A stretch of 64,000 nucleotides of DNA from Podarcis melisellensis (lineage: Eukaryota), in assembly GCA_964234715.1 (NCBI GenBank), contig OZ174279.1; one strand, 5' to 3'. Made by a program: the position numbers and the translations under genes. Shown piece after piece: positions 3,411-64,000 of the stretch. Below the pieces are notes generated by a model. That model worked only from the letters and a program-made list of their open reading frames with translations, ran no database searches and was not told the origin of the DNA. Within the stretch, counting starts at the first letter, position 1. The number at the start of each line of letters is the position of its first letter.

Positions 3411-4445
3411 CACTGTGTCATAATTGTAATGGTAGCCATTGGTGTCTTATGTTATTCTCTGTCATTTTAGTTTAAGCTGAGCTCCTTTTGTACTGACATT
3501 TTAATGGGTTTTAGAAATGTATATTTGTGTATTTTAATACGTTGCACACTTAACCAGGTGGTGAAGAGCAGCATAGAAGCAGATAAGTAAGAAAATGAAG
3601 TGTTACATCATCCCATTACTGGGGCCTAGCTGAATGATGGTTTCTTTCACAGGCAGGGGATTAAGATTAGTGAACAACTGTGTCCTGAAAGCCAAATGGA
3701 GTCATAAAAAATACATCCACAACTCAATGTAGAGATCTGAGTGATTAGCATTAAAATCAAGTGAATGATAGTAAAATCTGACACATGTGCTTTTTATGAT
3801 TGGGTTTCATCTTTAATGCCTTAAGAGGCAAGGAGTGCTGTAGTGTATGGGCATGGGGGATGGTGAGGTGTGTGATCTATGTGCTGGCAGATGTGAGCAT
3901 GCTCGGAATAATTTAACGTACTGATAAGACCTTGGGCTGAGGATGAAACCTGCATGAGTTAGAAAAAGACCTTGATGTCTGCTTTATTTGCACTTTTAGA
4001 AGTATTGAGTACATTGTAACTCGTACTCTAATTAATACATGTCTTTTAGCTGCTTTGCTACACAACTACTTCTAAGGAGCTGTTTAATGCATACCATAAA
4101 CCCTCCTTGCATTTCTCTTTGATGGAGATTTGCAGCATGCAGACAAATTAACTTTAAGCCTTTTGTGCTTCTCTGTTTGGGACTTGGAGATTTTTCCTCC
4201 CTACCCAGAAGTCTATCTTCTACATCTCTGCCAACTTTTTTCACATTTCTAAGAGACAGTTGGGTTTAATTTGTCACAATATAGGGAGAGTTACCATTGT
4301 CTTCCTGTTTTTATTATTTCATTTTGGAAGCAGTATTGTAGATGATAATCTTCAGTTTCTCTGTGAGAGGTTTTATTAATTTAGGGCAGCTTACAGTTTA
4401 CTTGTGAAGAAAAGAAGAAATGAATACTTTGTATGCATTTCAGTA

Positions 4446-4677
4446 CAGTGGTACCTCAGGTTAAGAACTTAATTCGTTCTGGAGGTCTATTCTTAACCTG
4501 AAACTGTTCTTAACCTAACGTTCCACTTTAGCTAATGGGGCCTCCCACTGCCACTGCGCCACTGCCGCACGATTTCTGTTCTCATCCTGAAGCAAAGTTC
4601 TTAACCCGAGGTACTATTTCTGGGCTAGCGGAGTCTGTAACCTGAAGCGTCTGTAACCTGAAGCGTCTGTACCACTG
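4446..4677. mobile_element. Tc1/mariner-type MITE (CAGTGGTACCTC TIR)
   Basis: TA|CAGTGGTAC...GTACCACTG|TA; same family as 31997, 51922 and 63181. Confidence 0.88.
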
Positions 4678-5267
4678 TAATTACCTTTGTTCCTTAGTTC
4701 CCTCCCCTCCACTGATCATATAATATAGTCCAAACAGGTGTGTTCTGTGCCTATGAAGCTCTTAGTGTCAGTTAATGTCAGTGGGAATTGTCCAGAGACT
4801 CTGGGATGGCAGCATGCTGATATATATATACAGCTGTGAATAGCTAGTTCACAGACAAGATTTTGCCTAAGGTTGTAAAATCGGCTGAGGTTTCTTCTAA
4901 AAAGGCACCACCCTCTTGTTTTCCTGTCTGTCTTGGGACCACACGAGACATTGCCTTCCATTGCTTAATAGCATTTTGTCCACCCCAAGGGTGGTGCCCC
5001 CATCTCAGCTGCAAGGTAGGCTCAGTGTCCCACCTGCTGCTTTCAATTGCATCAACATTTGGTGTTTAGCTCTTTTTGTTTGATGTGAAGCCAACACATG
5101 GGATCTCTTGGGTTTTGAGGGATGTGGCTTCTGGCATGTTGAGTAGGTTATGCTGCTTGTCTATAGAGGGTTGAAGTGGTAGGTGGGAGAACTGGAACAA
5201 AGCACTCAAGAGGACATAAATATGGCTTTATATTGCTTCTTCAGAAATAATAAAGCTGCTTCTCTCT

Positions 5268-7261: not shown

Positions 7262-7627
7262 GGGTAGAGGGTCCTGTAAAGGACCCCTGGGTGGTTAAGT
7301 CCAGTCAAACTTGACTATGGGTTGCAATGCTCATCTCGCTTCAGGCCAAGAGAGCCAGTGTTTGTCCACAGACAGCTTTCCAGGTCATGTGGCCAGCATG
7401 ACTAAACAGCTTCTGGCACAACAGGACACTGTGATGAGTGTCAGAGCGCACAGAAACGCCGTTTACTTTCCTACCACAGTGGTACCTATTTATCTACTTT
7501 CACTGGCATTCTTTCAAACTGCTAGGTTGGCAGGAGCAGGGACAGAGCAATGGGAGCTCACCCCGTCACGGGGACTTGAACTGCTGACCTTCCAATTGCC
7601 AAGAGGCTCAGTGGTTTATACCACAGC
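7262..7627 (-). mobile_element. Sauria SINE, diverged copy
   Basis: Matches the other four copies (ggtcatgtggccagcatgact, gctaggttggcaggagcagggac). Confidence 0.85.
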
Positions 7628-8132
7628 AAAGCAGCCCTTGCCCATTCTCCCCACTGAAGATTTTCCTGGATAAGAGAAGTGCTTCCATCATGTATGGGTG
7701 CTTTTTTAGATTGTATCAAATAAAGCATTTTGAATCCTCCTTTTTTATATATACAGAAGGACTTGAAATGATTGCCTCTTGTGAAGGCACCCATTAAAAC
7801 AAAGCCCACAGTTTCAGTGTGTTTCTAACTGAGGTTAGAAAGCACTTCTCTTTGCTTTCTTGCCTGTTTTGCATTGCGGCATGGCTCCCAAATTCATGTT
7901 TAATTTGTGTTATTGACACATAGGGGCTGATCTGTGCTGTTGAAGGATAAAGGCTAACTCTGCTGTAATCCTAAGCATACTTACTGGAAAGTAATTTCCA
8001 TTGAAATAAATGGATCCTACACCTGAGGTAATAATTCAGGACTGAAGGACCAGACACCACTGGCATAAGCAATCAGCATCTTTCTTATGCCACTACCGAT
8101 CTTCAGGAGGGGGTGGAGTTGCGGGCTCACGA

Positions 8133-8315
8133 CCCGCCCACACTCTTGCGGGGCTGAGGTCAGCCCCGCGGGAATTGCAGGGAGTCCCCAGTCACCCCGC
8201 CCACGCTCCCACGAGGCTGAGGTCAGCCTCGCGGGAATCAGGGATTCCCCAGTCACACCCCCGCGCGCCAGCCAATCGGCTGGCGGCCGGGGCGGGCCTT
8301 CCAGAGGCCACATAA
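8133..8315 (+). promoter_or_regulatory. LTR-type enhancer/promoter: two ~62-bp tandem units plus CCAAT, GC box and TATA-like CATAA
   Basis: Units 8133-8195 and 8196-8256. Each has CCGCCCAC (Sp/KLF/EGR-like), a hairpin-palindrome centred on TGAGGTCA, GCGGGAA (E2F-like) and an NF-kB consensus (GGGAGTCCCC 8180-8189; GGGATTCCCC 8241-8250). Confidence 0.6.
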
Positions 8316-8403
8316 GGTCGGGGCAGCCCCCGGCTCGCCCCTTTTCTCCCTGGCTGCGAGCGCGATTTCCCACCCACCCACCCTTTAGGTTCCGCCATCG
8401 ACC

Positions 8404-8511
8404 TTGCTATGGGCTTCGGCTGGTCGCCGCTTGGGGCCAGGTAGGAATTTTTCCCATTTGGCTAATTGGCTGGTTCGGGAGCCACTTGGTTTTTCGCCTA
8501 CCTCGTAGCAA
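8404..8511 (+). ncRNA. Predicted structured RNA domain with an ENE-like U-rich internal loop
   Basis: AGGUAGG (8439-8445) pairs with CCUACCU (8497-8503). Two UUUUU runs (8448-8452, 8490-8494) face each other and are closed above by CC/GG. Outer helix UUGCUAUG (8404-8411) pairs with CGUAGCAA (8504-8511). Confidence 0.55.
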
Positions 8512-11215
8512 TTCGTCACAACTTTCCCGGTTGGCGGTAGGCATTGGCCGGGGTATTGTCATGCAAATGAGGTGGGGGGGAGGAGCGCCATCACCTCCCC
8601 CAAAGATTGAAGGGTAGTTCGTTAAAGGACTCCGAGGGGCGACGCCTCGTCCGAAACCTACGGAGGCTAGGGCCTAAAGCGCGCCCCCGAGCGGTAACCC
8701 CTCGGGGAGCGCCTAGGGATACGCATCTCGGGTAGCTCCCCCTGTTGGTGTTTAACCCTTCCCGGTTAGATCGGATAGTCGGTTAGGGGCCAATGCCTAA
8801 AGCCAATACCTCTCTTTCCTGTAATCAATAAAGTTGTGGCCATTTTCGCCCATTAACTTAAATTCTTGTGTCCTGTGTCTTTATTCATTACACCTGTGGG
8901 GGGGAGGAAATAGCCACGCAACACACTTTTATTTAGAAGAGATTGATGTAAGTGGCTTTTATTAAGCAAACATTACTGGGTTACAAGAGTACTGTATTTG
9001 ATTTTCAGAGGTGATGTGAATGGTTGTTGATGAGAATAAATGAGTGAAGGAAAATTGGGTGCTAGATTTAACCGGGAAGCTTTGCTCTGTGTTTATTTCT
9101 GTGTGCCTTTGCTAGCTTGAATGAGATTGTAGTGAAAATGAAGTATCAAGCTGTTGTTATGTAGATTCCCCCTTAAACACTGCTGGGATTATTGTTTGCT
9201 TTTACTAATAAAGTGTATAACATGCCTTATGTTGTCTTATGTTGCAGCTTTTGCTTTTGTTCTTTTGCATTATGTTGCAGCTAAGGATTGCCCTCTGGAG
9301 TGTTGCAGCTTAGTATAACTGCCGCTCTTTTTCTTCCTATAAAATTATGAAAACCCTTCACATCTCTTTTACCTACAGTAGATCTGTTGTATTTCAATAG
9401 GAGTCTGATAGTCAAACCATATCTCCCCAGTCATCTCTGAACAGAAAATGGTGAAGAGTTACTCATTCCAGGATTGTGTTTTAATTGAAAATATTGGACA
9501 TTAAAGGGGGGGGGGATGGAGAGACATAATTTTTGTAGTAGAGATTGCTCTAGACCTTGATGACATGAGTGATGAAATAGGCAAGGCAAAGCAACAGAAA
9601 GAAACTAGGAGGTGGAGTAGCATGAGGACTGGACTGAAATACAAGACCAGATTGATTCAGAGCTTGGCTGAGACAGGCCCAGAGAGGCCTCTGAAAACAA
9701 GGAACAGGGGGATATACTGATATTTTCTTCTGACAAGATCAATTGTAGGGATAACCTATTGACTTCTTCAGAAAGCCTCTGGTACTGAGTGCCATGGAGG
9801 ATCGGTAACTGCATTTTGGTCCAGATAACCTGATTCTTTCTAGGTTAGTACTTTATGTGTATAGTAAATTATTCTTTGTTCAGTAAAATAGAGTAAGGAA
9901 TCCCAAAAAAACTTCTTTCCAGCTACGTTAAAATAGCATATATATATATATTTAAAAAGTGGCAGCTCTTAATTATATGCAGCATTGGTGGAATCTTTCA
10001 CAGCCTGAGGATGTCCACATTGTGCTCTTTTATACACAGAGCTCACTTACATGCAGGAAATCACACAGTAGTTCCCAGCTGTAGAATATAACGTATGTTT
10101 GTGTGTGTATGTGTGTGTGTATTCGTGCAAATTTTCTGTGTGTATAAGTGATTTTAAAATTTCTTATTGCTTCTTCCCAAGAAACACAGACCTGTTGCAA
10201 ACCACTAGCAAAGGGTTAATGGCTTTGTGATTGTTTAGTGTGAGTGCTTGTAAAAGCTTATAGTGAGCAGTGAAAAAGCACCTGTTATTTCCCCCTCCCT
10301 CCCTCCCTCCCTCCCCCCCTTCCACATTTCAATAGCTTATGCATGTGGCTCTCATATAGGAATTCAGTATTGGAGCTCAATATCATGTTCACATGCTCTA
10401 GAGTGCTAAGGGCCTCTCTAGAATTCAAAAGGTAGTGACACAGAATCGCCCCATCACAGAGTGTGCAGTGAATAGCTGCAGGGTCTCAAAGCCTCTTGAT
10501 TTCTAAATAACTAAGCAGTTGAAGTTACCGTACTTCCCCCCCACCAAACCCAATTACAATGTTCAGCATCAAACATTCTATGCCTCCCTATCTTTGTGTT
10601 TCTGCTCCCTATCTTTGTGCAGCATAGATGCAGACACTTAGCTGCTGCACCGTGAAGCTAATTTTGTTATTTGTGGGCTGCTTTAAGCTATTTGAAGAAG
10701 GTGGAATCGTGCTAGCAACTTGGTATAAATATATCCCTATGAGCAAGGAACAAGACTGTAGCCCTTGCAATTTGGATAGGGCATGGTTGACATACCCTAA
10801 CCCCCACCCAAAAAAGAATTGGGAAGAGGTATCCATACTCTTCTCAGGCAAGTGGTGCCATAAAAGTCTATCGTAGGAGTCGACTCCATAGCACACAACA
10901 TCAAAGAAGAATATTGTGTTTCATCTTTATACTAGGTGTGTTCGTATTGCTGATTTGTGAGTTGAAAGGGAGGGTTTGTACAGTATTCTATTTTTATTAT
11001 TTTTGGAACTGCTGTCGTGTATGTCGTCCTGAGTGTTGCTCATAAAGGCAGCCTAAACACATTTAAAATAAAATGAAGTATTGGGAGAGTTAGGTTTTTT
11101 CACAGACTGGGCTAAACTAATTGAAAAACAGGTAGTTCATTACCAGCTGAGTAGCTTTTCAATAGCAACTTAGAACTATCCAGACCATTCTTTGTTATGT
11201 AGATATAACTATGCA

Positions 11216-11565
11216 GGGACGCGGGTGGCGCTGTGGGTTAAACCACTGAGCCTAGGCTTGCCGATCAGAAGGTCGGTGGTTCAAATCCCCGCAACGGGGT
11301 GAGCTCCTGTTGCTCTGTCCCTGCTCCTGCCAACCTAGCAGTTCGAAGCACCTCAGAGTGCAAGTAGATAAATAGGTACCGCTCCGGCGGGAAGGTAAAC
11401 TGCATTTCCGTGCGCTGCTCTGATTCGCCAGAAGCAGCTTTGTCATGCTGGCCACATGACCCAGAAGGTGTAAGCCGGCTCCCTCGGCCAATAAAGCGAG
11501 ATTAGTGCTGCAACCCCAGAGTCGTCTGCGACTGGACTGGTCAGGGGTCCCGTTACCTTTACCTT
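11216..11565 (+). mobile_element. Sauria SINE, full length
   Basis: Head gggacgcgggtggcgctgtgggttaaacc; B-box-like ggttcaaatcc; (ACCTTT)n tail; flanking direct repeat TATGCA(GGGA) at 11210 and 11566. Confidence 0.93.
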
Positions 11566-12053
11566 TATGCAGGGAACATATATGGGATTGGGAGTGGAAT
11601 TCATTTGGTCCACTTTTCACGGCGGGCTGACGCAAACTGATACCCTGGTAGATGTGATACCCAGTTCTCTGCATTTTTGGTGTTCTGCACCATTTATATA
11701 AAAGATGCCCATGAATGTGCTTTTACTGGAGAATGAATTAAAAAGTGTGCATTTGTACATGACACAGACAATGGAATGGAACAGAACAACTCATGACTGA
11801 GTGCTAGTGAGACCTAAACAGGATGGTTTCGGTGGCTCAACCGAGCCAAGCATATATCACCTCCCCCCCCCCATGCAACCCCTTCCCCTCATTAATATAA
11901 GTGAGACCCACACCAGCCCTCCTGACTCTTCTAATGTAAGTTTGGTAGCAGATTAATCAACAAATTCCCTATTTTTTGTTACAAGTATCAGCAGATTAAT
12001 TTAGGTATTGATTAATGTTTCCTGTGGGGTGGATGCTGCCACAGACTCCCAAC

Positions 12054-20629: not shown

Positions 20630-21408
20630 TTGAGATCAGAACCTAAGAACAGCCTGCTGGATCAGCCTGGAGTTCAGCGTCCTGTGCCCATAGGAAGCTT
20701 GCAAGTGGGACCTGAGCTCAAGAGCTCTCTCCTGTCCTTCAGTTCAATAGCCTTATCCTCCATGAATTTGTCTAATCCTAAAGCCATCCAAGCTTGGTGA
20801 CCATCACTGCCTCCTGTTGAGAGCAAGTTCCATAGTTTAACCTTACACTATGTAAGACTGGCTTTATTTTATCTGTTCAATGAATTCAGCTCCATGGGAT
20901 ATCCATGTGTTCTAGTGTTATGAAGGATGGAGAAAACTTATCTCCATCCACTTTCTCCATGTCATGCATTCTTTTATACACTTCTATCAGGTCACCTGGG
21001 ATGAGGGTGGTGCTGTGGGTTAAACCACATAGCCTAGGACTTGCCAATCAGAAGGTTGGCAGTTCGAATCCCTGCGATGGGGTGAGCTCCCGCTGCTCAG
21101 TCCCTGCTCCTGCCAACCTAGCAGTTCGAAAGCACGTCAAAATGCAAGTAGATAAATAGGTAGGAAAGTAAACTGTGTTTTCGTGAGCTGCTCTGACTTC
21201 TCCAGAAGCAGCTTAGTCATGCTGGCCAAATGACCTGGAAGCTGTATGCCGGCTCCCTCGGCCAATAAAGCGAGATGAGCGCTGCAACCCCAGAGTCGGC
21301 CACGACTGGACCTAATGGTCAGGGCTCCCTTTACCTTTACCTATCAGGTCACCTCTTACTTGACTTCTCTCTAAACTAAAATACCCCAAATGCTGCAACC
21401 TTTCCACA
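20630..21408 (-). mobile_element. CR1 LINE 3' fragment, host of the Sauria SINE at 20998
   Basis: agaacctaagaacagcctgctggatcag 3' end; ccatgaatttgtctaatcc; ctctaaactaaaatacccc. Confidence 0.7.
20998..21340 (+). mobile_element. Sauria SINE inserted into a CR1 fragment
   Basis: Head, body and ACCTTT tail; 14-bp TSD CTATCAGGTCACCT at 20984-20997 and 21341-21354. Confidence 0.93.
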
Positions 21409-23844: not shown

Positions 23845-24674
23845 ATAGAAGAAACCTTGCATGCCATAGATTGAGCCACATCTGGACTCCAGCCTTTTTT
23901 CTGCTCCTACAAATTTGCTTTACTCTAAGCTGCTCACTTTTACAAGAATAAACACTGCTATCCAATTACGGTATATGAAATAATATACAATTATGCTGAA
24001 ACACAGTATAGAGAATAATAAACAGAATCAGTTATTTGTTTATATAACCTACCATAGCCAGCATATGTAGCTGCAGAAACACTGGAAGATAAAAGTAGAA
24101 TAGGAACAAAGAATTTTTTAAACCACCAGTATATGTTCAATTTAGTAACTAAATTCAGGTTGCCCCCAAATGCACACTGAAAGCTCAGTGTTTTCTCCAT
24201 AACATGCTCGTTTTCCATCTGCTGAGAGTTTTCTGAAATGCGGGGCAGCCAGTCATTTGTGAGGCTATTCCATGTGGTTTGGTTTTTAAACACATAGAGT
24301 ACTTCTAAGTTGATGGCCTGGTTCAGGTAATTGTTTGAGGATTCATAAGCCACTGTTTAAAACAACAGGAATGGGCGTCAGGACTAGGAACAGAGAGGGA
24401 TTTAGGGAAGCATGAATTGTTTGGTTGCACTGGGCATGGAGTCTCAGGGGCGTTGTAGGGGGCACAACAACTATGATGTAGAATGGAAGAGGTAGGGGGC
24501 AGTGAATTTTGGCGTCGCAGATGGTATTGCTGAAATTTGAGACCCCCAAGGTCCACCACTTGTGATTCGAGGACCCTCCCCCCACGCTTGTGGACAAGAA
24601 AGACACATGGACACAGTCAAAACAAAAAAAATTCCTTCCAGTAGCACCTTAAAGACCAACTAAGTCAGTTCTTG

Positions 24675-24712
24675 GTATGAGCTTTCGTGTGCATGCACAC
24701 TTCTTCAGATAC
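24675..24712 (-). ncRNA. Second identical minimal hammerhead ribozyme on the minus strand
   Basis: gtatgagctttcgtgtgcatgcacacttcttcagatac is the exact reverse complement of 24859-24896. Confidence 0.85.
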
Positions 24713-24858
24713 ACTGAAACAGAAGTTTCGGTTCCAGTTACAGATAGGTAGCCGTGTTGGTCTGCCATAGTCAAAACAAAAAAAATTCCTTCCAGTAGCA
24801 CCTTAAAGACCAACTAAGTCAGTTCTTGGTATGAGCTTTCGTGTGTATCTGTTTCAGT

Positions 24859-24896
24859 GTATCTGAAGAAGTGTGCATGCACACGAAAGCTCATAC
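24859..24896 (+). ncRNA. Minimal type I hammerhead ribozyme (PLE-associated)
   Basis: Stem I GUAU (24859-62)/AUAC (24893-96); core CUGAAGA (24863-69); stem II palindrome GUGUGCAUGCACAC (24871-84); GAAA (24885-88); vestigial palindromic stem III (AGCU); predicted cleavage after C24892. Confidence 0.85.
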
Positions 24897-26231
24897 CAAG
24901 AACTGACTTAGTTGGTCTTTAAGGTGCTACTGGAAGGAATTTTTTTTGTTTTGACTATGGCAGACCAACACGGCTACCTATCTGTAACTGAAACATGGAC
25001 ACAGTATTTAAGGTTAATGGGCTACAAAAGGCCACAGCTTTATTAATTACAGCATGTGAGAGGTATTGGCTTAGGCATTGGAAAAAAACCACAAAGTTTG
25101 ACTCCACCCCTCAGGGAGGGGTGAGTCTAACAAGGGTTAACCACCAGTAGGGGGAGCCTGTTGATGCAAATACAACTGTAAGCTCTCCCCTGATGTCACC
25201 GGGGGTCGTGCCATGGCCCCCAGCCACAGCAGGGCATCGGACAGGATCCACGACCGCTGGATTCCTTTAACGGAGTACCCATAAAGGAAGGCAATTGCCA
25301 CCCCCCGCCCTTACATACACCAACAACAGATTCCAATGCCTAACCGCCACTTCTGGGAACTCTTTCCCCTCCTCTTGGCTCACTGCTTGCTGTCTTGGGC
25401 ACAAAGATCCTGCCTTGTACTTAGCCAGAGTTCCCAGTTACAGCTGATCTGGTTAGATCTACCTTAAATGTACATTAACAAACCAGGAAACCAACAAACC
25501 ACGTTGAGATCAAGCCCCATAGCAGGGCATGTAGGAGAGGGAAGCTGTTTGCCCAGGGCTCCTGAGGCCTGAAACTGGGTACTGCCAGCATTTTGAAGAC
25601 ATTACTTTTTAAGCAAGTCATTTTACTGCTCTGTAGATTAAGTGCTAGTCCTGGCTCTCTTGGTTTTAAATGCTGTTTTAAATGTTTTTAATACTGGTTT
25701 TAGCGGTTTTTTAAGTGCTGGTTTTAGTATTTCTTCATGCTATCCTTAGTGTTGTGGTGCTGATGTTTTTAAAATAGATATTACAGGTTTTTAAAAATAT
25801 GTTTTGTTGGCTGCTCTGAGCATCTCCACCAGAGGGGGAAAGCAGGCTATAAATTTAACTATCGATAAATAAAAACCAATGGTGCTTGATTATTTCTATG
25901 GTGCAAGTCTTTCTATTTTATATATGCAGGCTATTACTTAACTTTAAAAACCATTCTGCTCAATATTTTTTTATCTCTAGAAAATGTGAATTCTTTTTTC
26001 TGCTGTCTTAATTCAGGTCTCAGGGCAGTTCACAGAATAAAATCAGAATATAAAACCACAAAATACATAATCAAAAAAGAACACCAACAACCCAATAATC
26101 GCCCAACACATTTTAAAAGGCCATAGGATGTAGGTTAAAGACATCACCCCCTGCCCTGTGCCAGGTGGAGAGAGGCAGTGGCAGGACCCTCAGGCTTTCA
26201 GCAGGGTGATACTTGCTGGGCGGCAGCAGCA

Positions 26232-26532: not shown

Positions 26533-26877
26533 AAAAGGTAAAGGTAAAGGACCCCTGACAGATAAGTCCAGTTGCGAACGACTCTGGGGTTGCCGCACTC
26601 ATCTCACTTTACTGGCTGAGGAGCCAACGTTTTTCCGGGTCATGTGGCCAGCATGACTACGCCATTTCTGGCGAAACCAGAGCAGCACATGTTTACCTTC
26701 CCACCAGAGTGGTACCTATTAATCTACTTTCACTTTTGGTGTGCTTTCGATCTGCTAGGTTGGCAGGAGCTGGGACCGAGCAACAGGAGCTCATCCCATC
26801 CCGGGGATTCAAACCGCGACCTTCCGATCAGCAGGCCCTAGGCTCAGTGGTTTAGACCACAGCGCCACTCGTGTCCC
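26533..26877 (-). mobile_element. Sauria SINE
   Basis: aaaggtaaaggtaaagg tail at left, head ...cacagcgccactcgtgtccc at right; TSD CCACCAAAG(C/T)GTA at 26520 and 26879. Confidence 0.92.
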
Positions 26878-29706
26878 TCCACCAAAGTGTACTTACAGGA
26901 AAATCCAGCCAAGGATGTCATGGGGTTTTGGAGGACAGGCACCCAATAAGTATTACTTACAGATACACTTCACACATCTTGAAAGTATGTAAGGACAGTA
27001 ACAACTCCAGACCCCAACCATTTCACCAAACAAATTTCTTTTGGTAATTGTAATGCAGTTTCTTATTCCATTAATTGAAAATGTGCTGGGAAAAATGGGA
27101 GAAAATTTCATCACAGGACTAGAAGGAAGGAAGGGGGCTAGTTCTCTGGAAATTGCTTTCTTCTCCCCTTCTGCCTTAGGACACTCTCACAGCAATTTTG
27201 CCGGGTCAATTTCTTTCCTGAAAGAGACTAATGGAGACTTGCAGTGACTTTGTAATACAACTGTTTACTTACAGATGCACGATTGGTCAGGTATTTGAAG
27301 GGTGCCAAAAGAGGCACATCGTGGAGAATCGTAGTCCCACACACTCCTGGAAGTCCAAGTCAGCCAGTCACAAGTTTCACTGACCTTTTTGTTCCCTAGC
27401 ATTACTATGCCTGAGAATGTTTTGACATGGACGAGCCCACACTCATTCACATCTCTGCTGAACAACAAATCTCACTGCCTCAATGCCAGCACTAGATTTA
27501 GATTCCTGACACTTACGCGGTCAATTGACTTTGATGCAGCAGCAGGCTGGAATTAGACACAAAATTGGCTTCATCAGATGGGAAATATTTTATACTAGTC
27601 CTGGATTCATTCAGCTGATAAAGGTCTGAGAATATGGTTTTGGTAATGACACTGGGGATAGAGAGGCACAAAGTAAGGCTAAAATCACTAAATCAAACCT
27701 GTTATGGGAAACCCCAGCCTTCTCGTCATAGATTATTAATATTGCAGTCTCACTACACATTTGTGAGTGGCCACCACAATTATAAAAGGCTGTACAGACA
27801 GACTGCTACAGAGACTACATGGAAACACATCAAGTTGGTAAGACTATTTGTTTCTTTAATTTGTGGTTCTATGTGCTCAGTTGGGAATATGCCCCACTCA
27901 AGGCCTGGGGCCTTGTCTTCAAGTAAATACACAGAGGGCTGGACTTGCTAAGGACTCCATGCTCTTTAGGTACCATGTCCCAAACACTGCTCATCTTCCA
28001 TGAGAAAACATTCTTTATGTATTTCATTCTTTGTTTTTATGTGATATTTGTTTGGATAAATAAACACTCCACCCTTCAATTTTAGTAATGTAAATTCAGA
28101 AGGCAAGGATACAGAGAAAAGTAAAGCAGAATACAAAAAGAAAAAGCTATAAAATGCAATAGCAGAATTATAAAACAAGCCAAACAAGATGAAACAAGAT
28201 AAAAGCAGCAATAAAATCCAACAACATAAAAAAACTTTGATGTGGTTATAAAACATCATCCTTGTTCTTTTAGTTTAAAAGTTCAGGAGAAAAGAATTGC
28301 TTTAATCCACCACCTTTCTAAAGTATCAAACCTTTCTGGGGAAGAAGGTGTTACCTGTGAGGGGCAGCACCACAGAAGAGGCTGTCTCCTCACTTGCTAC
28401 CCACATTACTTTTCAAATAGGAATAGGGGAGAGATTTCTTCAGGTCAGTTTTTCATGCTAACCGAAAGATCTTTCCAAACTTGTAGTTCTCCAAATTTTG
28501 TGATGTGGTTCTGTAAATAAGTATGTGTAAAGAGAGAGAGAGAGAACATATATTAGGAGGAAGTATGCCTGACACCATGGATGTGAGTAAAAACATTGTT
28601 CAAAAATGCATTATGCCTAGCTTGGAGGCTAGCATGCCCTCAACTCTTCCACGTTGATGATGGTGGGCCACAGTATCAATCCATACTGTAGTGGGCCCAA
28701 GCTTGGCTTCCAGCATATGAGCTGAGTGGCCACATAGTTAGGTGGTCCATTGTACCATTCCTGCCCTAAGCCATGCTGAACTGTGAATGCTGTAACCCAT
28801 AAAGGTGAGGTCATTTAAACCCATTTCCAGTATTCAAGGGATTCTCGCGTCCCCAACTTCCTGCCCTATCTTGTGAGCACAACCAGAGCATGGACAACTA
28901 TAGCCAGAGTGTATCTCTCGAAAGAAACAGAAGGACACACACCAACCAACTGTATTTCTCTCATTAAGCAAAAACAAAAACAAGGCAAGTGCATTTGTAA
29001 TTCCATAGCATATTTCATTCAGTTGTGTGTGAAGTACCATGAAGTACCATATTGCCACTAAATCAAAATGTCGACAGTGCCAAGTGTTTCTTTAATGGTC
29101 CCACTTTGCCAAGCTCAGATCTCTATTTTTTTCTGGTGAACCACTCTGGTAGACCAAGAGTTTGGAAAGACACCTAGTTCTGAGCATTTGCATTCAAGCC
29201 GTTCTGCCCAGTTCTTTAAAATAACCTTGTGCTGCCTGCTAGTTCCATGCAACTGCACCATACAGTAGGGTCTGCTAATGTTAAAGGGTATTACAATAGT
29301 AAGCTATAATAACAAGAGAGGATTGTGAAAATAAAATCCTGCTTTGTTTTAAATCTGTTGCTGTCAGCAGTCACAAAGCTGAAAAGAATGTAGTCTTGAG
29401 GTTTTATGGGAAATGAAAATGTTTAACAAATACATCAATGTGCTCGCTTTTTTCTTTTTCTGTTTTCTTTTCAGTAATTAATATAGTGCATCTTCTTTCA
29501 AAGTCACTGTGTAGTCTGAGATTTAAAATATCAGGGGGCTTGCTCTGTTTTCTTTTTTTGCCCTGATACTGCTTTTACATTTGGGACATATTTGTTCTTT
29601 CTATAGCTAAATTTCAAGATTGAAGAATAACATGCCAATTTTCATATTACCAGCATGAGAAGTATATAATAACAGACACATATTTAAACTCATGCACAGT
29701 GTGTAT

Positions 29707-30611: not shown

Positions 30612-31577
30612 ATGCAAACAGAGCCAAGATCTACTTTCTCCACTGAAGCATGGTTTTCCCTTTTCTTTGCATACATCATATGGAAGTCATATGTAGACTT
30701 TATGATAACACTTTCTTCCTGACCCAGGGGCCCTTTCTCTTATCTTCCACTACACTTTCCCAGGGCTGTGGATATTATAAAGTTGGGTTTCTGAAATGCT
30801 GAGCATCTGGTTCTGATTTGCACAGGTGTAAAGCAAGTGGAGTTAGGTAACGGAAAACCTAAAATCGAAACACACGCCTAGCTTTATCCCCTTTTAGGGC
30901 AAAATAAATCTCGCTTCAATCCATTTACATCCTAGCTGAGGCAAGGACTTTGACGCAGAGGCTCCCCCTTCCTATTCTATCATAATGACTCCATCCCTTG
31001 AGAATGTGATGTTTTGTGCTAAAGTATTCTGAATAATCTGAATAAGCATGCTATGTGGGAGACAAGTATGTAATTTGGGGGTAATCTTTTCTGCGTCATG
31101 CATTAGGCATTGTTTCAGTTTTATTGTCTGCTAATGTTGGAAGTCAGCTGAGTTCCCCAAGGTACAAACTCATTATCTGCTCAGCATGGAGGTTCCCTCT
31201 ACCTCCAATGCATAGTCAAAGAGAGTGTGGAATCTTGTAATGACTTGGCTCATCTCCAGAAGCTCATTTTAAAAGACCAGCAGTTGAGACATGAAGTTTC
31301 CAGAGGTGAGCTGTGTTTGATCAGCTGTGTTTGGGCATCACAGACGCAACATCAGCTGCAATGTCAAGCATGCTGTGAGCACATGATAAAATGTTTAAAC
31401 AGGATTCTCTCCTTGGAGGATGACTTTGACCTGTTTTCATGAAATATTCAGCAGTGTGAATGTATATTTTAAAAATTCAAAGGCTTGGCTAAGGCTTTAA
31501 AGCCGCTTATATTTATATTACATTCCAAAAGGAAAAAGTTGTGCACCTCTGCTAATTTCTCCCATTATTATTATTAT

Positions 31578-31835: not shown

Positions 31836-31996
31836 ATAACATTTTATTTGCCCAAGGCAACCTGAAGCAACTTACAATCAACCAAACAAAAACCCATTAG
31901 ATAAATTAAAAACAAGCAGGGTGGGGGAATACATTAGAAACACCCCACTCACTACTAAAAGGCCACAGATAGTTTTGCCTGGTGCCTACGTATATA

Positions 31997-32213
31997 CAGT
32001 GGTACCTCGGGTTACATACGCTTCAGGTTACAGATTCCACTAACCCAGAAATAGTACCTTGGGTTAAAAACTTTGCTTCAGGATGAGAACAGAAATCATG
32101 CTCTGGTGGCGTGGCAGCAGCTGGAGGCCCCATTAGCTAAAGTGGTGCTTCAGGTTAAGAACAGTTTCAGGTTAAGTACGGATCTCCAGAACGAATTAAG
32201 TACTTAACCCGAG
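31997..32213. mobile_element. Tc1/mariner-type MITE, right TIR truncated, nested in an older repeat
   Basis: TA|CAGTGGTACCTCGGGTTA...; reverse orientation relative to the 4446 copy. Confidence 0.85.
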
Positions 32214-36754: not shown

Positions 36755-37449
36755 CGGCCTTTGAGTCCTTGCTTCGCTTTGCTGAGAACCATACCACTTC
36801 TCTGTTTGAGACTGTCTACAGATCCATGTCAAAGGAAGCAGCAGAGCCTGTCAAAGAGCTCTTTACAGACATCTCTCTCTACCTCTTGGGCGCTCAGACC
36901 ACAGTGGAAAGTGTCCTTTTCCGGTTCTTCGACAGCCTCTTCCCTTTGGTTTACAGCCGCCTAATCAACCCAGGCATGGCTAGTCTGTCAGAGGAGTATA
37001 CAGAGTGCCTGCGGCTAACGCGGCAAGATATAAATCCATTTGGACTCTGTTCTAAAGAAGCAGTTACAAAGTTGGAAAAGTCTCTTTGGGCAAGCAGGAC
37101 ATTCAATCAGGCCCTGGGTATAGGCATTGAAGTACTGAACGCTACAGAACATGCCACGTTGACAAAGGAATGCAGCAGAGCCCTAGTGAAGATGCAGTAT
37201 TGCCCACATTGCCAAGGTCTGACTTTGATCAGACCCTGTGAAGGATATTGTCTCAATGTCATGAGGGGCTGTTTTGCCAGCATATCTGAACTGGACTCTC
37301 AGTGGAGGGAATATATCTATACCCTGGAGTATCTCACTAACGAAATGGCTGGATCGCATGATCTAGAAGCAGCACTTTTGGGTATCCGGAATTCAATCAA
37401 TGACGCCATCTTGCATGCCCAGCTGAATGGACCCCACCTGTCTGCAACT
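36755..37449 (+). CDS. Internal coding exon (exon-3 equivalent) of a glypican-5-like gene (GPC3/GPC5 subfamily)
   Basis: Translation AFESLLRFAENHT...FFDSLFPLVY...ECSRALVKMQYCPHCQGLTLIRPCEGYCLNVMRGC...AQLNGPHLSAT carries the glypican cysteine pattern and closely resembles GPC5 (ECSRALLKMQYCPHCQGL...KPCMGYCLNVMRGC). Acceptor tttcgtttttcttcttcctgcag|C at 36754/36755 (phase 1); donor ACT|gtaagt at 37449/37450 (phase 0). The 695-bp length matches GPC3/GPC5 exon 3 as I recall it. Symbol left blank because orthology (GPC5 versus a GPC5-like paralogue) is unresolved. Confidence 0.95.
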
Positions 37450-37710
37450 GTAAGTATTGTGTTCAGATTTGTTTTCAACTTCCTGCTGCTACTTTTAACC
37501 TTTGGTGTGTGCATTGTCTCTAACTATTGTTTACTACTGCTTGTACAAATATCAGTTCTTGAGGGGGCCTTCTTCCTTTTTCCTTTCTCACATGCTTATT
37601 GATATTAGGCAACTGATAAAAAGCTCACAAGGAGGAATCTTTCAAAAGGAAATGAAGAGACTTCTTGAGGAGGAGTATGTGTAAATCAGAATGTTAGTAG
37701 TCATTATAGT

Positions 37711-38073
37711 AAAGGTAAAGGGACCCCTGACCATTAGGTCCAGTCGTGACCGACTCTGGGGTTGCGGCGCTCATCTCGCTTTACTGGCCGAGGGAGCCAG
37801 CGTTTGTCCGCAGACAGCTTCCGGGTCATGTGGCCAGCATGACTAAGCTGCTTCTGGCGAACCAGAGCAGCACACGGAAACGCCGTTTACCTTCCCGCTA
37901 TAAAGCGGTACCTATTTATCTACTTGCACTTTGACGTGCTTTCGAACTGCTAGGTTGGCAGGAGCAGGGACCGAACAATGGGCGCTCACCCCGTCGCAGA
38001 GATTCGAACCGCCGACCTTCTGATCAGCAAGTCCTAGGCTCTGTGGTTTAACCCACAGCGCCACCCGTGTCCC
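37711..38073 (-). mobile_element. Sauria SINE, young CpG-retaining copy ~260 bp downstream of the glypican exon
   Basis: 16-bp TSD TAGTAGTCATTATAGT at 37695-37710 and 38078-38093. Confidence 0.95.
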
Positions 38074-49945: not shown

Positions 49946-51921
49946 GTTTATGACTGAGCAAGGATTTAAGCAGGCTTTCCTCCATGTGAATCAAGGACCC
50001 TGTCCACTGCCCTGCACATCTTTCCCAGAAACAAGGTAATCCGAGTTTTTCAGAGTCTCAATTCTGACTAGGATGGTAATTCAGGTGGTTTCTTGAGAGC
50101 ACCTAGAATTGAAGATGCAATTCCAAGAGCAAAATTGCATTGTCAGTTGCTACATCCTGAGGTGAATAGCTCGAAAACTTGGAAATTTCAGACAGGTCAT
50201 ACAACCTTAGACTAATGCGCAGCAAATCTTCCAAATCTGAAACGGAAATAGCCACCCTGTGAAGAACGTAACTTTGTTTAGAGTGAGTTCACAGTACTTG
50301 CCAGCTGGTAATGAACAGCTTTATTAAGTGGGCCGAACAGCGTTGTAAAGTACTCCTGGACACTTCGGGAGAACGCTGAGAACAAAGCTTAGTCGCTTCT
50401 TTCCCCGAAGCTCACACAGTTCAGATAATCACCATGTGCTGTCAGCAAGTAGTGTAGTAGCCAATCACTCTTGAGGTGCTACAAATAAAACAGCGCAATC
50501 CATCATGAATTTGCAGCTAGGGAAAATAATAGTTTTAATGAATTATATGCTAGCAATGGAACTCCAGCATGCATTCTCCTTGGAGTGTTTCAGCTGCATT
50601 CTTTGGCCATGTGCCATTTTCCCCCTTGGCTAGCCCTGCGCTGAGAAAATCCAGGGATGTTGGTCGAAGGCTTGCTGCAGGGCCAGTCCATTAAAGATAC
50701 TTTTCCTCCTGCTGATGGGGATTCCCAGCATGCACTGGAAATCGTCTTGGCTGGTAAACTATTACCTTCCGGCTCCATTCAGGACACAGGAAGCAGTGGT
50801 GCCCTTGGACCTTAAGTCACTTGATTGTCAAAATAAATATTCCCCAAAACAAAAAAGGCCTATATCACATGGGTGGCTGAGTGCTTCCTTCCTTGTGCTC
50901 TTACCTGATGATTTAGCACCAGGTTTCCCAGGAACATGTAGTGCACTGTCCACCCCCCATCCCTTTCCAGCATGCCAAGTGGCAAACGAAATGCAAACAG
51001 AAAGTTTAGAGTATCTAATGGATTCTGCGTAGGGGATTTTTGCTGTGGCTTGCTATAGTGTCTCCCAGCTGCTGCATAATTACGCCTGAGTAAATTTTTA
51101 TCTGATGTTTAAAAGTGTTTTGATTCTATTTAGAGAATGTATTTTGTGTCGTTAATTTGTTTTCTGTTGATTTTACATTATAACCAATGCTGGGCTTGTT
51201 TACAATGAATGGTGGGCTCAAAAATAGAAGGAAATAATATAAATAACACACACCAGTGTTTGTTCTACTTGGAGTAGACCCATTGAAGTCAACGGACTAT
51301 TGTTTTTAGTAGGTCTACTCTGAGTATGGCCTAGTTGGCTCTAAGCCAGTGAATTTCAGTTGGCACTTCTGTCTGTTGCAGCAAATTGTTGGTCTCATAA
51401 ATTAACAAGGCATCAAACAATGAATTTAGAGTGTTGCTGGGTTAGGGTCCAGTCCCTGATGAAAAATGCAGCCCCAGCATATTGGCAGCTAGACTGCTTG
51501 TTATTCATTGTAAGGCGCCTAGCTATGGGAGTGTTAGATGTTTGACAGCATTGAATAGATTCTAGTCAGCCATACAAACTACCTCCAGTCAAGTGGAAAA
51601 GACCATAAAATTGTTTTAGCAACAGCTAATTCTCTTGCTGCTTTTGGACCTTCTTAACTCCTTGGTTGCCAATGTTTATATTTGCTGCTCAATATACCAA
51701 ATATGTTGTTGCTTATATTGTGGAGCACACTTAAATGAACCTGTCAAATGAAGCGAAATTGGTTTTAAAGCTGACCTCCCCGAATGATATTTCTGTCAGT
51801 GCAGTCACCCTTATTCTGTGCTTCTAGCATGGTGGTACCCAGCACAGATTCCTCCACACGTTTGGACTACAACTCCCATCATCCTCGGTCAATGGATTGA
51901 GGATGGGGCTGAAAGGAGCCA

Positions 51922-52130
51922 CAGTGGTACCTCGGGTTACATACACTTCAGGTTACAGACTCTGCTAAGCCAGAAATATTACCTCAGGTTAAGAACTTTG
52001 CTTCAGGATGAGAACAGAAATTGTGCTCCGGCGGCCCGGTGGCAGCGGAAGGCCCCATTAGCTAAAGTGGTGCTTCAGGTTAAGAACAAACCTCTGGAAC
52101 GAATTAAGTACTTAACCCGAGGTACCACTG
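51922..52130. mobile_element. Tc1/mariner-type MITE nested in a palindromic ggactacaactccc MITE (~51860-52145)
   Basis: CAGTGGTACCTCGGGTTA...TAACCCGAGGTACCACTG|TA. Confidence 0.88.
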
Positions 52131-52306
52131 TATAGTCCAAAACATATGTAAGGCATCATGTTCACCTCCCCCATTCTAGCACCAATGTAACGTGGAGTAA
52201 TTTTTGTGTGTATGAGGAGTGTGTGCTCGTTTTAGAACTAAATCAGAAACTAAACGAATGAGCCCAATTCGTTTCAGTTTGCTACCTGCCATGGGAATGT
52301 CAAACG

Positions 52307-61302: not shown

Positions 61303-63180
61303 TAGGTTTGAAAAAAGTGCATGCCTAGATTCAAACAATTGCAGCTAGAAAAAAAAGTCCAAAATCCCAATGGAGAAGCCCAGTCTCTTAGAAATATCTT
61401 CAGGAGACCTGCTTTGGGCAGGCATGTTCTGATACTTGAAAGAGCCAGCTTGTCAATAATAGTGAAACAGGCACAATCCCATTGGCCTGGGGCTCATCCA
61501 CATTCCACTTGTCTAGAAAGCATGGGTCGAAGAGTTTTCTGCTTGTCCCATACTTTCTAGCCACTGGCCCGAGATGTTTCCCACTTGCCTTGCCACTTTC
61601 CCTGGCAAAACCTGCTCTTTACCACTGGATCGTAGCAAATGTAAATGTGTGGAAAGCCCAACTTGACATTTGGTTTGATGCTGTGGTAAAGAGCAGTTTT
61701 TCCTGGAGGAACCAGGGAGACAAATGCAAGTGTGAATGAGCCTTCAGTGTCAAACACATTCATTGTCAAACATATTCAGTTTAATTCATAGCCTCTAGCT
61801 ATATATGTGCTTTTTCATATGCAAAAGAAAGCATCCTGGCATGATCTGGATTGGGACTACAGCGTGTGTGGAGAGTAGAATTTTAATCCATCTTTAAACC
61901 TAGCCGATTCTCCACTTATGGCAATTGCAGGCACCAGGGGAAGCTCTTTTTTTACTATCAGTAACTGTGGAGGGAGGAGATTTCCAGGGGTTCTCGACTA
62001 TAGGCCAACTGTGGGGTCAGGAATTTGAGTCAGCTATTGAGCAATGCAGAAATGTCCATTTCAGGGCAAATATTGAATAAAAAAGGGTAACTACTGTTGT
62101 TAAAATAATGCTGGCACAATTATTCAGCTGCTCCGTTGTGCCTGCTTTAAGATTTGGCCTTATAGCAGTTTTCTTTCATTGTTCTCATAAGGAAGCATTT
62201 CAGGTAATTTGTGCAATCCCTACAGTCTATCTTCGTGTGCCATAAATTCCTGAAATGGGGTAGTGATATATGGGCTGAAGGAAGATTCTGTACAGGCACG
62301 GAACAAAGGAATGTTTAAATTTGGAGCTGTCATCCAAGAAACTATAAATGTACCACTCAGATATTTCAGGTTTTTGTTAAAAACGAAAAGGTTGAAGAAA
62401 AGAAACTTGTTTTGTTTTCAAAAGGACACATTATGCTGCTGATCTCCCCCCCACCCCACCCCCCTTTAAAATATTGAGCTGGGGGTGTAAGGAGGCAGCA
62501 TTTTCTAGTCTGATCTGTATTCTTTCCAATCAGTGCTGCTTCTGCTCTGCTGCAGTTTGGTTTCTGCCAAATACCATGACATTTAGCTTGCTGTCCACTA
62601 TTTAACATGTTACATCACTTGTGCCACCATTTACATAACTTACGTATTTTACATTCATTTCGATGTAAATGAAATGTTAAGATAATGTGGAAAAAAATCA
62701 GTAGGTATCAATTGTTGACTGAAAAGGCAGTGATGTGAATGAAGACCAGTCATAGTCATTTGACTGATTTCTCTTCCAGACCACAGCAATTTCTGCTTCC
62801 TTTCCCATTTTTGTTGGGATTCTCTGACCCCCCTAATTATAGGGTGTCAGAGCACATTCTAGTCAGTCAGGTTATTTAGATATTTCCAGCACTGGAAATA
62901 AATTGTAAGCATCTTCCTCATCTCTGAATCTAATAAAGTCAACTCTCTCCTTCTTCAAATCTTGCTCACATCTTCCAAGGTTCACCTGGAGCCCACTTCT
63001 ACATAGCACTATCCCATTCTTGGTCTAAAGAGACAACCTGCATATGTCCAGCTGAATGTGGTTCAGTTCCCTCCTCAGACCTTCTGCTCAATGTGTGAAA
63101 GTCTGGAGGTGGAGCCAGAAGACTGAGGGGGTGGGGCCAACTTGCACAGCCCTGTTTCCCTCTGCGCATTCTTTGAATTA

Positions 63181-63406
63181 CAGTGGTACCTCAGGTTAAG
63201 AACTTAATTCGTTCTGGAGGTCCGTTCTTAACCTGAAACTGTTCTTAACCAGAGGCACCACTTTAGCTAATGGAGCCTCCCACTGCGGCTGCGCTGCTGC
63301 CGCGCGATTTCTGTTCTCATCCTGAAGCAAAGTTCTTAACCTGAGGTACTATTTCTGGGTTAGCAGAGTCTGTAACCTGAAGCGTATGTAACCCGACGTA
63401 CCACTG
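63181..63406. mobile_element. Tc1/mariner-type MITE
   Basis: TA|CAGTGGTAC...GTACCACTG|TA; near-identical to 4446-4677. Confidence 0.9.
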
Positions 63407-64000
63407 TAATTTCTGAAGAGAGCTTTAGTGGCTCAGAGTTGTCACTGCTCTTTGAATAGCAAGGATTGTTATTGGTGAAAACACTGTCTGTCTATAATCA
63501 CTGCATAACTCCTAGGCTCCAACACAGCTAAATGGCATTTTAGGGAGCCAACACAGCTAAATGGCATTTTTAAAAATGCACTCCAAACTTATTGGGCAAT
63601 ATAAGTCTTGCTTGGGTGGAATTGGCTCTGACAATGTCATTTTGAGATGTTTGACAATCCAGTTGGCTTTACTGGATGCCACTAACAGCTACTGTAAATG
63701 GTCTGGTATTGAATCAAATTCACTGAATGCCAGTCTAGTTAGAATAAGCCAAAACAAAATAGCTCCAAAGCAGCATTTTTTCCCAATGAAAAGGTTTGTC
63801 ATGCATGTTCTTCCAACAGCTGTTTTTATTTTAGGTTTCATTTCAAATACATTCAACTAAATGCAACGCTCAGATTCATCATCAAAGGTCACCAGAAATC
63901 CACAGATTTCCCCCCCAAAAAAGATCATTATCAAGTTCTGAGCAATTGTGTGTTTTATTACTTTCATATTTTACATTTCTGAGTTTTCATTTGCTACCCC

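Follow-up and report, generated by a model that had tools for sequence, protein, structure and literature searches.

Two diverged repeat copies with a long-range stem beside a poly(A) signal in Podarcis melisellensis: a possible LTR-like terminal region

The stretch of Podarcis melisellensis DNA analysed here (64,000 nt, GCA_964234715.1, contig OZ174279.1; hereafter the window) contains two old and diverged copies of a repeat whose unit is about 380 nt long. It is composed of a stem-closed domain of 276-283 nt followed by a tail of about 100 nt with a poly(A) signal. The stem and one hairpin inside the domain were retained in both lineages despite about 40% divergence and many indels between them. 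With a confidence just short of even, both loci are explained as dead and isolated copies of an LTR-like region at the end of a retroelement, where a fast-evolving insert is closed off by a long-range stem beside the poly(A) signal. The insert would then represent a variable region with little structural constraint and not a conserved multibranch machine. All the conservation comparisons given below rest on n = 2 copies, both situated within one 64-kb window.

Extent and surroundings of the two copies

The window has the composition of vertebrate-type DNA, with about 41% GC, numerous interspersed repeats and zero N. A large glypican exon was found at 36769-37599, and its nearest relatives are squamate glypican-5 proteins. 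The exon showed 91% identity to a 3.2-kb Logan contig, 86% to Gekko and Varanus and 81% to Anolis. Owing to this glypican-5 affinity, both repeat loci were assigned to the non-coding DNA of the squamate GPC5 gene, where the two copies sit in an intron. Self-comparison of the window was performed by blastn, motif search and nhmmer, the last with a profile built by hmmbuild from both copies. It revealed exactly two related loci, one on the + strand (about 8532-8907) and one on the - strand (about 25349-24993), which bears out the proposal of a repeat family with two diverged copies made in an earlier, sequence-only reading of this DNA. A weak, old relic resembling the tail is also present at 28742-28880 (profile E 0.0026), and its putative closing stem is ordinary, standing at 43% of background. 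An arm-like 10-mer pair at 31104 and 31205 was considered as a further copy and ruled out, as it gave no alignment. The stem arms did not occur elsewhere in the window above chance, and two pattern scans for further copies in metagenome contigs returned 0 matches. None of ten window ORFs was present in the protein collection by exact look-up. The 176-aa ORF lying over copy 1 returned just two spurious tandem-repeat proteins when compared with representative proteins.

The homology detected by nhmmer starts where the closing stem has its outer base, at 8532 in copy 1 and at 25349 in copy 2, and the range of copy 1 matched by copy 2 is 8532-8874. A short motif common to both copies opens slightly earlier, at 8524 and 25359. 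Upstream of the stem, the best local score between the copies was 24 against 20 +/- 2.3 in the shuffle null, and the flanks could not be aligned. At the other side, the homology ends in both copies in a G-run, at 8896-8907 in copy 1 and at about 24585-24574 in copy 2, and no similarity between the copies was found past it. Copy 2 is split by a later insertion of 375 nt with a 13-bp target duplication on either side (24605-24617 and 24993-25005). The insertion was left uncut and the two pieces of copy 2 were compared to copy 1 separately. The homology to copy 1 picks up again beyond the insertion, in 24604-24574. The positions of all features are collected in Table 1.

Table 1. Coordinates of the repeat copies and of their features in the window
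Feature	Position	Strand	Basis or remark
Copy 1 of shared module (stem-closed domain and conserved tail)	8524-8907	+	nhmmer; tail alignment to copy 2 piece B
Copy 2 piece A (stem-closed domain, tail as far as insertion)	24993-25359	-	
Copy 2 piece B (tail end including G-run)	24574-24604	-	
Later insertion splitting copy 2 (composite hairpin-forming short repeat, 375 nt)	24618-24992	.	
CpG-rich promoter-like stretch, upstream of copy 1 only	8094-8523	+	Motif readings; not homologous to copy-2 flank
5' arm, copy 1 (outer 5 bp, 2-nt loop, 12 bp)	8531-8549	+	
3' arm, copy 1	8788-8806	+	Two CCAAT motifs, 8790-8794 and 8803-8807
5' arm, copy 2 (outer 4 bp, 2-nt bulge, 13 bp)	25331-25349	-	
3' arm, copy 2	25067-25083	-	
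Variable GC-rich interior, copy 1	8550-8787	+	GC 0.6, CpG o/e about 0.9-1.0
Internal hairpin supported in both copies, copy 1	8704-8741	+	-22.7 kcal/mol, z -4.24, pair probability 0.9-1.0
Internal hairpin supported in both copies, copy 2	25151-25190	-	-13.4 kcal/mol, z -2.20 alone
AATAAA poly(A) signal, copy 1	8827-8832	+	Within 85%-identical block 8790-8873
AATAAA poly(A) signal, copy 2	25039-25044	-	
GU-rich stretch, downstream-element position	8866-8882	+	Kept in copy 2, either side of insertion
G-run at homology end (putative primer-binding site)	8896-8907	+	Position and TGG-type start recall primer-binding site

The sequence around the copies was analyzed for features of known element classes. 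Copy 1 forms the 3' edge of a CpG-rich region (8094-8800) with a CpG o/e of 0.7-1.0, against 0.1-0.2 in the flanks. The part of this region upstream of the module holds a 63-bp tandem repeat with palindromes (8133-8256), a CCAAT (8272-8276), a GC box (8289-8296) and a TATA-like motif (8310-8317). On these motif readings it may be the U3 of copy 1, or else a host CpG island beside the insertion site. In copy 2, a 17-nt purine run ends 10 nt before the TG and is suggestive only as a polypurine tract. The module opens with TG at 8532 and 25349, and a common CA end could not be fixed. The string TTACA at both ends was tried as an LTR end and found to be wrong, as in copy 2 it belongs to the later insertion. 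A scan of TG/CA boundary pairs for target-site duplications of 4-6 bp gave 4-mers at chance level; a matching 5-mer at 8089-8093 and 8913-8917 was seen, but chance alone should give about one. Within the window, no other copy was found that lies in direct orientation and might serve as a partner LTR, and no retroelement Pfam domain that could represent a gag/pol remnant was found within about 8 kb of either copy. Neither copy has a tRNA-, 5S- or 7SL-like head or the A-rich or LINE-type tail of a tRNA- or pol III-derived SINE; ARAGORN found no tRNA-like head, Rfam no other pol III head, and an A-rich tail is absent. The Rfam covariance-model search gave no match at gathering score across the window and nothing relevant at E up to 10 around the copies. 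At that level the sequence around both copies and the copy-2 tail gave only chance matches to miRNA models, all outside the domain. The fold had not been recognised as a named RNA family from its sequence, and this search agrees. Among the classes considered, an LTR-type terminal region calls for the fewest assumptions, which is not to say that it is proven.

The closing stem and the polyadenylation region

The domain is closed by a perfect helix of 12 bp in copy 1 (8538-8549/8788-8799) and of 13 bp in copy 2 (25071-25083/25331-25343). Both perfect helices extend outward by 4-5 pairs, at 8531-8535/8802-8806 across a 2-nt loop in copy 1 and at 25346-25349/25067-25070 across a 2-nt bulge in copy 2, and the total closing stem comes to 17-19 bp. 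TA flanks the perfect core of the stem at either end. One inverted CCAAT motif is situated in the 5' arm and two CCAAT in the 3' arm. At the two innermost, adjacent pairs, copy 1 has C-G where copy 2 has A-U, a change on both sides; taken alone, two covarying pairs in such a stem have a chance probability of about 1 in 16. The stem pairs are all Watson-Crick and therefore carry no information on the strand, or on whether the pairing acts in RNA or in DNA. The sequence-only reading had thus given the closing helices with correct positions and letters and had correctly noted the change of two C-G pairs to A-U, and the stem is in fact longer than it claimed.

The closing stem was present in the MFE structure in all ten contexts folded, ranging from the bare domain up to 900 nt. 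Its pair probability was 0.82-1.0, except in two long copy-1 contexts where it was 0.12-0.14. The stem duplex has an energy of -31.8 kcal/mol in copy 1 and -25.8 kcal/mol in copy 2. These values fall in the 0.2% and 0.8% tail, respectively, of a background of 3000 random arm/upstream pairs drawn from the same window, with the MITE inverted repeats included. The folding z-score of the whole domain was -2.85 for copy 1 and -4.35 for copy 2.

The tail is the best-conserved part of the unit, with 85% identity over 8790-8873. It is composed, in order, of the two CCAAT motifs in or just past the 3' arm, a pyrimidine-rich spacer, AATAAA, a CA about 20 nt on and a GU-rich stretch. The last three are canonically spaced in both copies. 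The AATAAA lies 27 nt past the perfect helix in copy 1 and 26 nt in copy 2, close to the 30 nt or so reported earlier for the end of the domain, and about 20 nt past the extended stem. The CA at 8851-8852 is the likeliest cleavage site, judging by the letters of the tail. Taken together, the predicted tail elements form a complete vertebrate-type polyadenylation site. Such an arrangement, in which the signal and the GU-rich element following it both lie within the repeat, here 85% conserved between the copies, is a feature of LTRs.

The variable interior

The insert enclosed by the stem is about 240 nt long and shows about 55-60% identity between the copies, with many indels. The alignment of the domain has 252 aligned positions, 101 of them mismatched, and a further 48 columns with gaps. 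Of the 21 CpGs in copy 1, just 5 correspond to TG or CA in copy 2, and CpG decay was ruled out on this count as the source of the interior divergence. The identity of 85% in the tail against 55-60% in the interior, along with the poor CpG fit, indicates that the difference arose in the source lineages and not merely by neutral decay after insertion. Uniform neutral decay cannot produce such different values in neighbouring parts of one unit. The constraint must therefore have differed, the clamp and the poly(A) module being kept while the insert was free to change.

Without the closing stem, the interior folded no better than dinucleotide shuffles (z -0.94 in copy 1 and -1.76 in copy 2). The sequence-only reading had listed a series of internal helices recurring in the same order in both copies. 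All the listed stretches are complementary as written, and this part of the claim stands. In the folding ensemble, a probability of 0.01 or less was obtained for the long-range GAAGG/GTTAAA helix, for the CCCC/GGGG hairpins and, in copy 1, for the CGAGG hairpin. The best structure containing all listed helices lies above the MFE by 20.4 kcal/mol in copy 1 and by 18.7 kcal/mol in copy 2.

The consensus fold was compared with column shuffles on a sequence-only alignment and gave a z-score of -4.55 for the whole domain and -2.43 for the interior alone. The antisense control gave -4.23, and the antisense strand scores as well as the sense strand or better. In the whole domain, 11 compensatory pairs were counted, where the column-shuffle null gave 8.6 +/- 2.6; the interior had 7, with 8.4 +/- 2.5 in the null. 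Alignment of pair-probability profiles revealed that the copies are no more similar to each other than a copy is to a shuffle. With compensatory pairs at null level, an interior that folds like its shuffles and no preference for a strand, the earlier claim of a multibranch fold of about 260 nt kept by compensatory changes was not upheld.

One internal hairpin is supported in both copies (Table 1). Its base is conserved in sequence and its distal stems differ between the copies. The antisense of the copy 1 hairpin reached just z -1.34, owing to three G-U pairs. The probability of the copy 2 hairpin drops to 0.2-0.3 when the whole domain is folded. The z-score of a terminal hairpin was strong in copy 2, at -2.77, but weak in copy 1, at -1.2. 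Leaving aside the closing stem and the one supported hairpin, the interior acts like GC- and G-run-rich sequence of equal composition.

Possible explanations and comparison with known elements

Several lines of evidence favour the explanation of both loci as dead copies of an LTR-like terminal region. The stem is dominant in both copies, rare against the background and changed on both sides at two pairs. The hairpin is significant in both copies and sense-specific in copy 1. Enhancer-like tandem repeats and promoter motifs stand upstream of copy 1, and a purine run upstream of copy 2. The poly(A) signal, CA and GU-rich stretch keep their canonical spacing in both. The explanation is weakened because there are two copies only, their upstream flanks are unrelated, and neither shared LTR ends nor a target duplication, a partner LTR or remnants of gag/pol could be detected. 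On these grounds the R-like, transcribed placement proposed in the sequence-only reading is a candidate one. The LTR-like explanation is weakened also by the purely Watson-Crick stem, by covarying pairs that chance might give, and by the richness of the window in MITE-type inverted repeats. In transcripts running into the poly(A) site, the stem would fold the variable insert into a closed domain. As the insert would be looped out, the upstream sequence would be held beside the poly(A) module, and 3'-end formation would be insensitive to the content of the insert.

The stem could also be a DNA feature without a role in RNA, which we regard as a serious competing explanation, if a somewhat unlikely one. 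It would then represent either the terminal inverted repeats of a MITE-like element (262-276 bp, TA-flanked) in the ancestor of the family, or an inverted duplication of a double CCAAT-box module serving as transcription-factor sites. The perfect Watson-Crick arms without any G-U pair fit this well, as do an antisense strand that folds equally well or better, the TA at both ends of the perfect core, and the opening of the homology exactly at the outer end of the 5' arm. The distribution of CCAAT, two in the 3' arm and one inverted in the 5' arm, suits the transcription-factor version. The small size of the unit and its terminal inverted repeats of 10-19 bp are those of MITEs, and such units are common in the window: about 18 loci carry perfect inverted repeats of at least 12 bp with a spacing of 20-300 nt, where about 2.4 k-mer hits would be expected. 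Unlike MITEs, which are found at independent sites with unrelated flanks on both sides, the two copies agree at 85% identity over about 100 nt beyond the 3' arm, and this highly conserved flank means that they did not arise as separate MITE insertions. Had the insertion been ancestral, nothing would have kept the arms complementary, yet two pairs changed in concert, and the pairing runs 4-5 bp past the TA. The interior is GC-rich, unlike that of typical MITEs, and neither arms above chance nor free-standing copies were seen elsewhere in the window.

It is improbable that the module is a self-standing short retroposon, for example one that goes back to strong-stop type (R-U5-primer-site) cDNA, or a SINE-like unit ending in a LINE-type tail. 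The sharp limits of homology, one at the base of the stem and the other at a G-run whose start resembles a primer-binding site, are in line with such an origin, and so are the unrelated flanks on both sides and the failure to find a partner LTR or internal genes. Against it, a tRNA-like or other pol III head and convincing target duplications were not found, and the copies have no tail that is A-rich or clearly a microsatellite. That the whole domain of about 260 nt is a conserved multibranch functional RNA, of the response, transport or ribozyme type and kept by compensatory evolution, is highly unlikely. The closing stem and one hairpin are indeed conserved, the whole-domain consensus fold stands out from its column shuffles, and every listed helix can be paired as written. 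Set against these are the shuffle-like interior, compensatory pairs that are not in excess, an antisense strand as good or better and a profile similarity not above shuffles. The claimed fold lies 19-20 kcal/mol over the MFE with helix probabilities of 0.01 or less, and no Rfam ribozyme or retroviral element was matched even at E = 10.

It is very doubtful that the stem-closed cassette of the possible LTR-like region is a cis-acting RNA module of a novel kind, belonging to an LTR retroelement family of squamates. If the stem is selected at the RNA level, a reptile example would join the short list of LTR structures which organise 3'-end formation, with a design in which the clamp alone is conserved and the enclosed fold is not. 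As the evidence stands, the case mainly advises caution, as complementary stretches picked by eye in GC- and G-run-rich repeats may equal what composition leads one to expect.

Retroviruses regulate the use of their poly(A) sites in three described ways, HTLV-1 bridging among them. In HTLV-1, a large structured element is situated between the AAUAAA in U3 and the distant cleavage site and bridges both (PMC3694450). Similar to the Rex-responsive element of HTLV-1 and BLV, the lizard repeat has a domain of a few hundred nucleotides with a long closing stem beside polyadenylation elements, placed in the LTR part of the transcript if the LTR-like explanation holds, and its folding would join the two flanks of the domain. 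Unlike in HTLV-1, the lizard AATAAA lies downstream of the stem at a normal distance to the CA and the GU-rich stretch. No bridging is therefore needed, and the HTLV-type mechanism does not apply. The lizard copies differ from HTLV-1 and BLV also in having no Rex-like gene or internal region and no conserved internal architecture. The analogy with the deltaretroviral Rex-response element, drawn in the sequence-only reading, thus fails on anatomy, with the AATAAA outside and downstream of the stem. A conserved multi-stem interior, which could act as a protein-binding platform of the Rex/Rev/Rec type, was not seen in the two copies.

The HERV-K Rec-responsive element and similar U3/R response elements are large folded regions in the LTR portion of the 3' UTR of retroelements. 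The lizard domain would resemble the HERV-K element in being a large folded region at such a place in the 3' untranslated region. It differs from that element in having no sequence or Rfam match and no sign of a conserved multi-stem interior or of a cognate protein.

The TAR and poly(A) hairpins of HIV-1 start at the 5' edge of R and are positioned directly upstream of or around the AAUAAA (PMC2645353). Likewise, the lizard structure begins at the 5' edge of the conserved, putatively R-like unit, upstream of the AATAAA. The HIV-1 hairpins are short and local and one of them contains the AAUAAA, whereas the long-range lizard stem closes an insert of 240 nt and leaves the AATAAA outside.

The host gene

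The large open exon (see table) carries a Glypican domain, and its top relatives are squamate glypican-5 proteins, with 91% for a Logan contig and 86% for Gekko and Varanus. The whole window is located inside the GPC5 gene of a squamate.

Features in and around the two module copies and other repeats of the window
Feature	Position	Strand	Detail
Large open exon	36769-37599	+	Glypican domain, Pfam E 3.9e-76
Inverted repeat	25353-25363 / 25427-25437		perfect, 11 bp, 63 nt between arms
G-run terminating copy 1	8896-8912	+	starts TGG
G-run terminating copy 2	24574-24595	-	starts TGG
Composite short repeat within copy 2	24618-24992		13-bp target duplication
63-bp tandem repeat, two copies	8133-8256		85% match; short palindrome in each copy
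Weak, old relic resembling module tail	28742-28880	+	profile nhmmer E 0.0026
~230-bp repeat, four copies	4444-4682, 31995-32213, 51921-52132, 63179-63411		80-90% identity
~350-bp SINE-like repeat, five copies	7276-7627, 11212-11566, 20997-21342, 26534-26881, 37709-38073		70-85% identity

Borders and interruption of the module

The module is a ~380-nt repeat with a stem-closed domain and a conserved tail containing the poly(A) signal. Its minus-strand copy (copy 2) is adjoined upstream by the 11-bp inverted repeat, which overlaps the short motif where homology with the plus-strand copy (copy 1) begins; a 17-nt purine run (25360-25376) is situated between the arms and abuts the one at 25353-25363. 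At the other end, the letters following the G-run of copy 2 resemble, in reverse complement, a tRNA end with T-loop and acceptor-like parts. The G-run region is a possible primer-binding site.

The insertion splitting copy 2 forms a long, near-perfect (99%) hairpin with arms at 24612-24723 and 24848-24959. Several miRNA precursor models matched it, all below threshold; the best, mir-3688, reached 45 bits, whereas its gathering score is 84. In the tail-like relic the poly(A) signal is replaced by ATAAAG, and a search upstream of it for the closing stem, the long-range helix bounding the variable interior of the module, revealed none exceptional.

Surroundings of copy 1 and other repeats

The tandem repeat near copy 1 lies within a 700-nt CpG-rich stretch (8094-8800) surrounded by CpG-poor DNA. 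The repeat and this stretch may be enhancer-like or, alternatively, represent a host CpG island. One copy of the SINE-like repeat is present immediately upstream of copy 1. The ~230-bp repeat is considered a MITE-like family because at least two of its four copies possess terminal inverted repeats of at least 12 bp; inverted repeats of this type were found at about 18 loci across the window.
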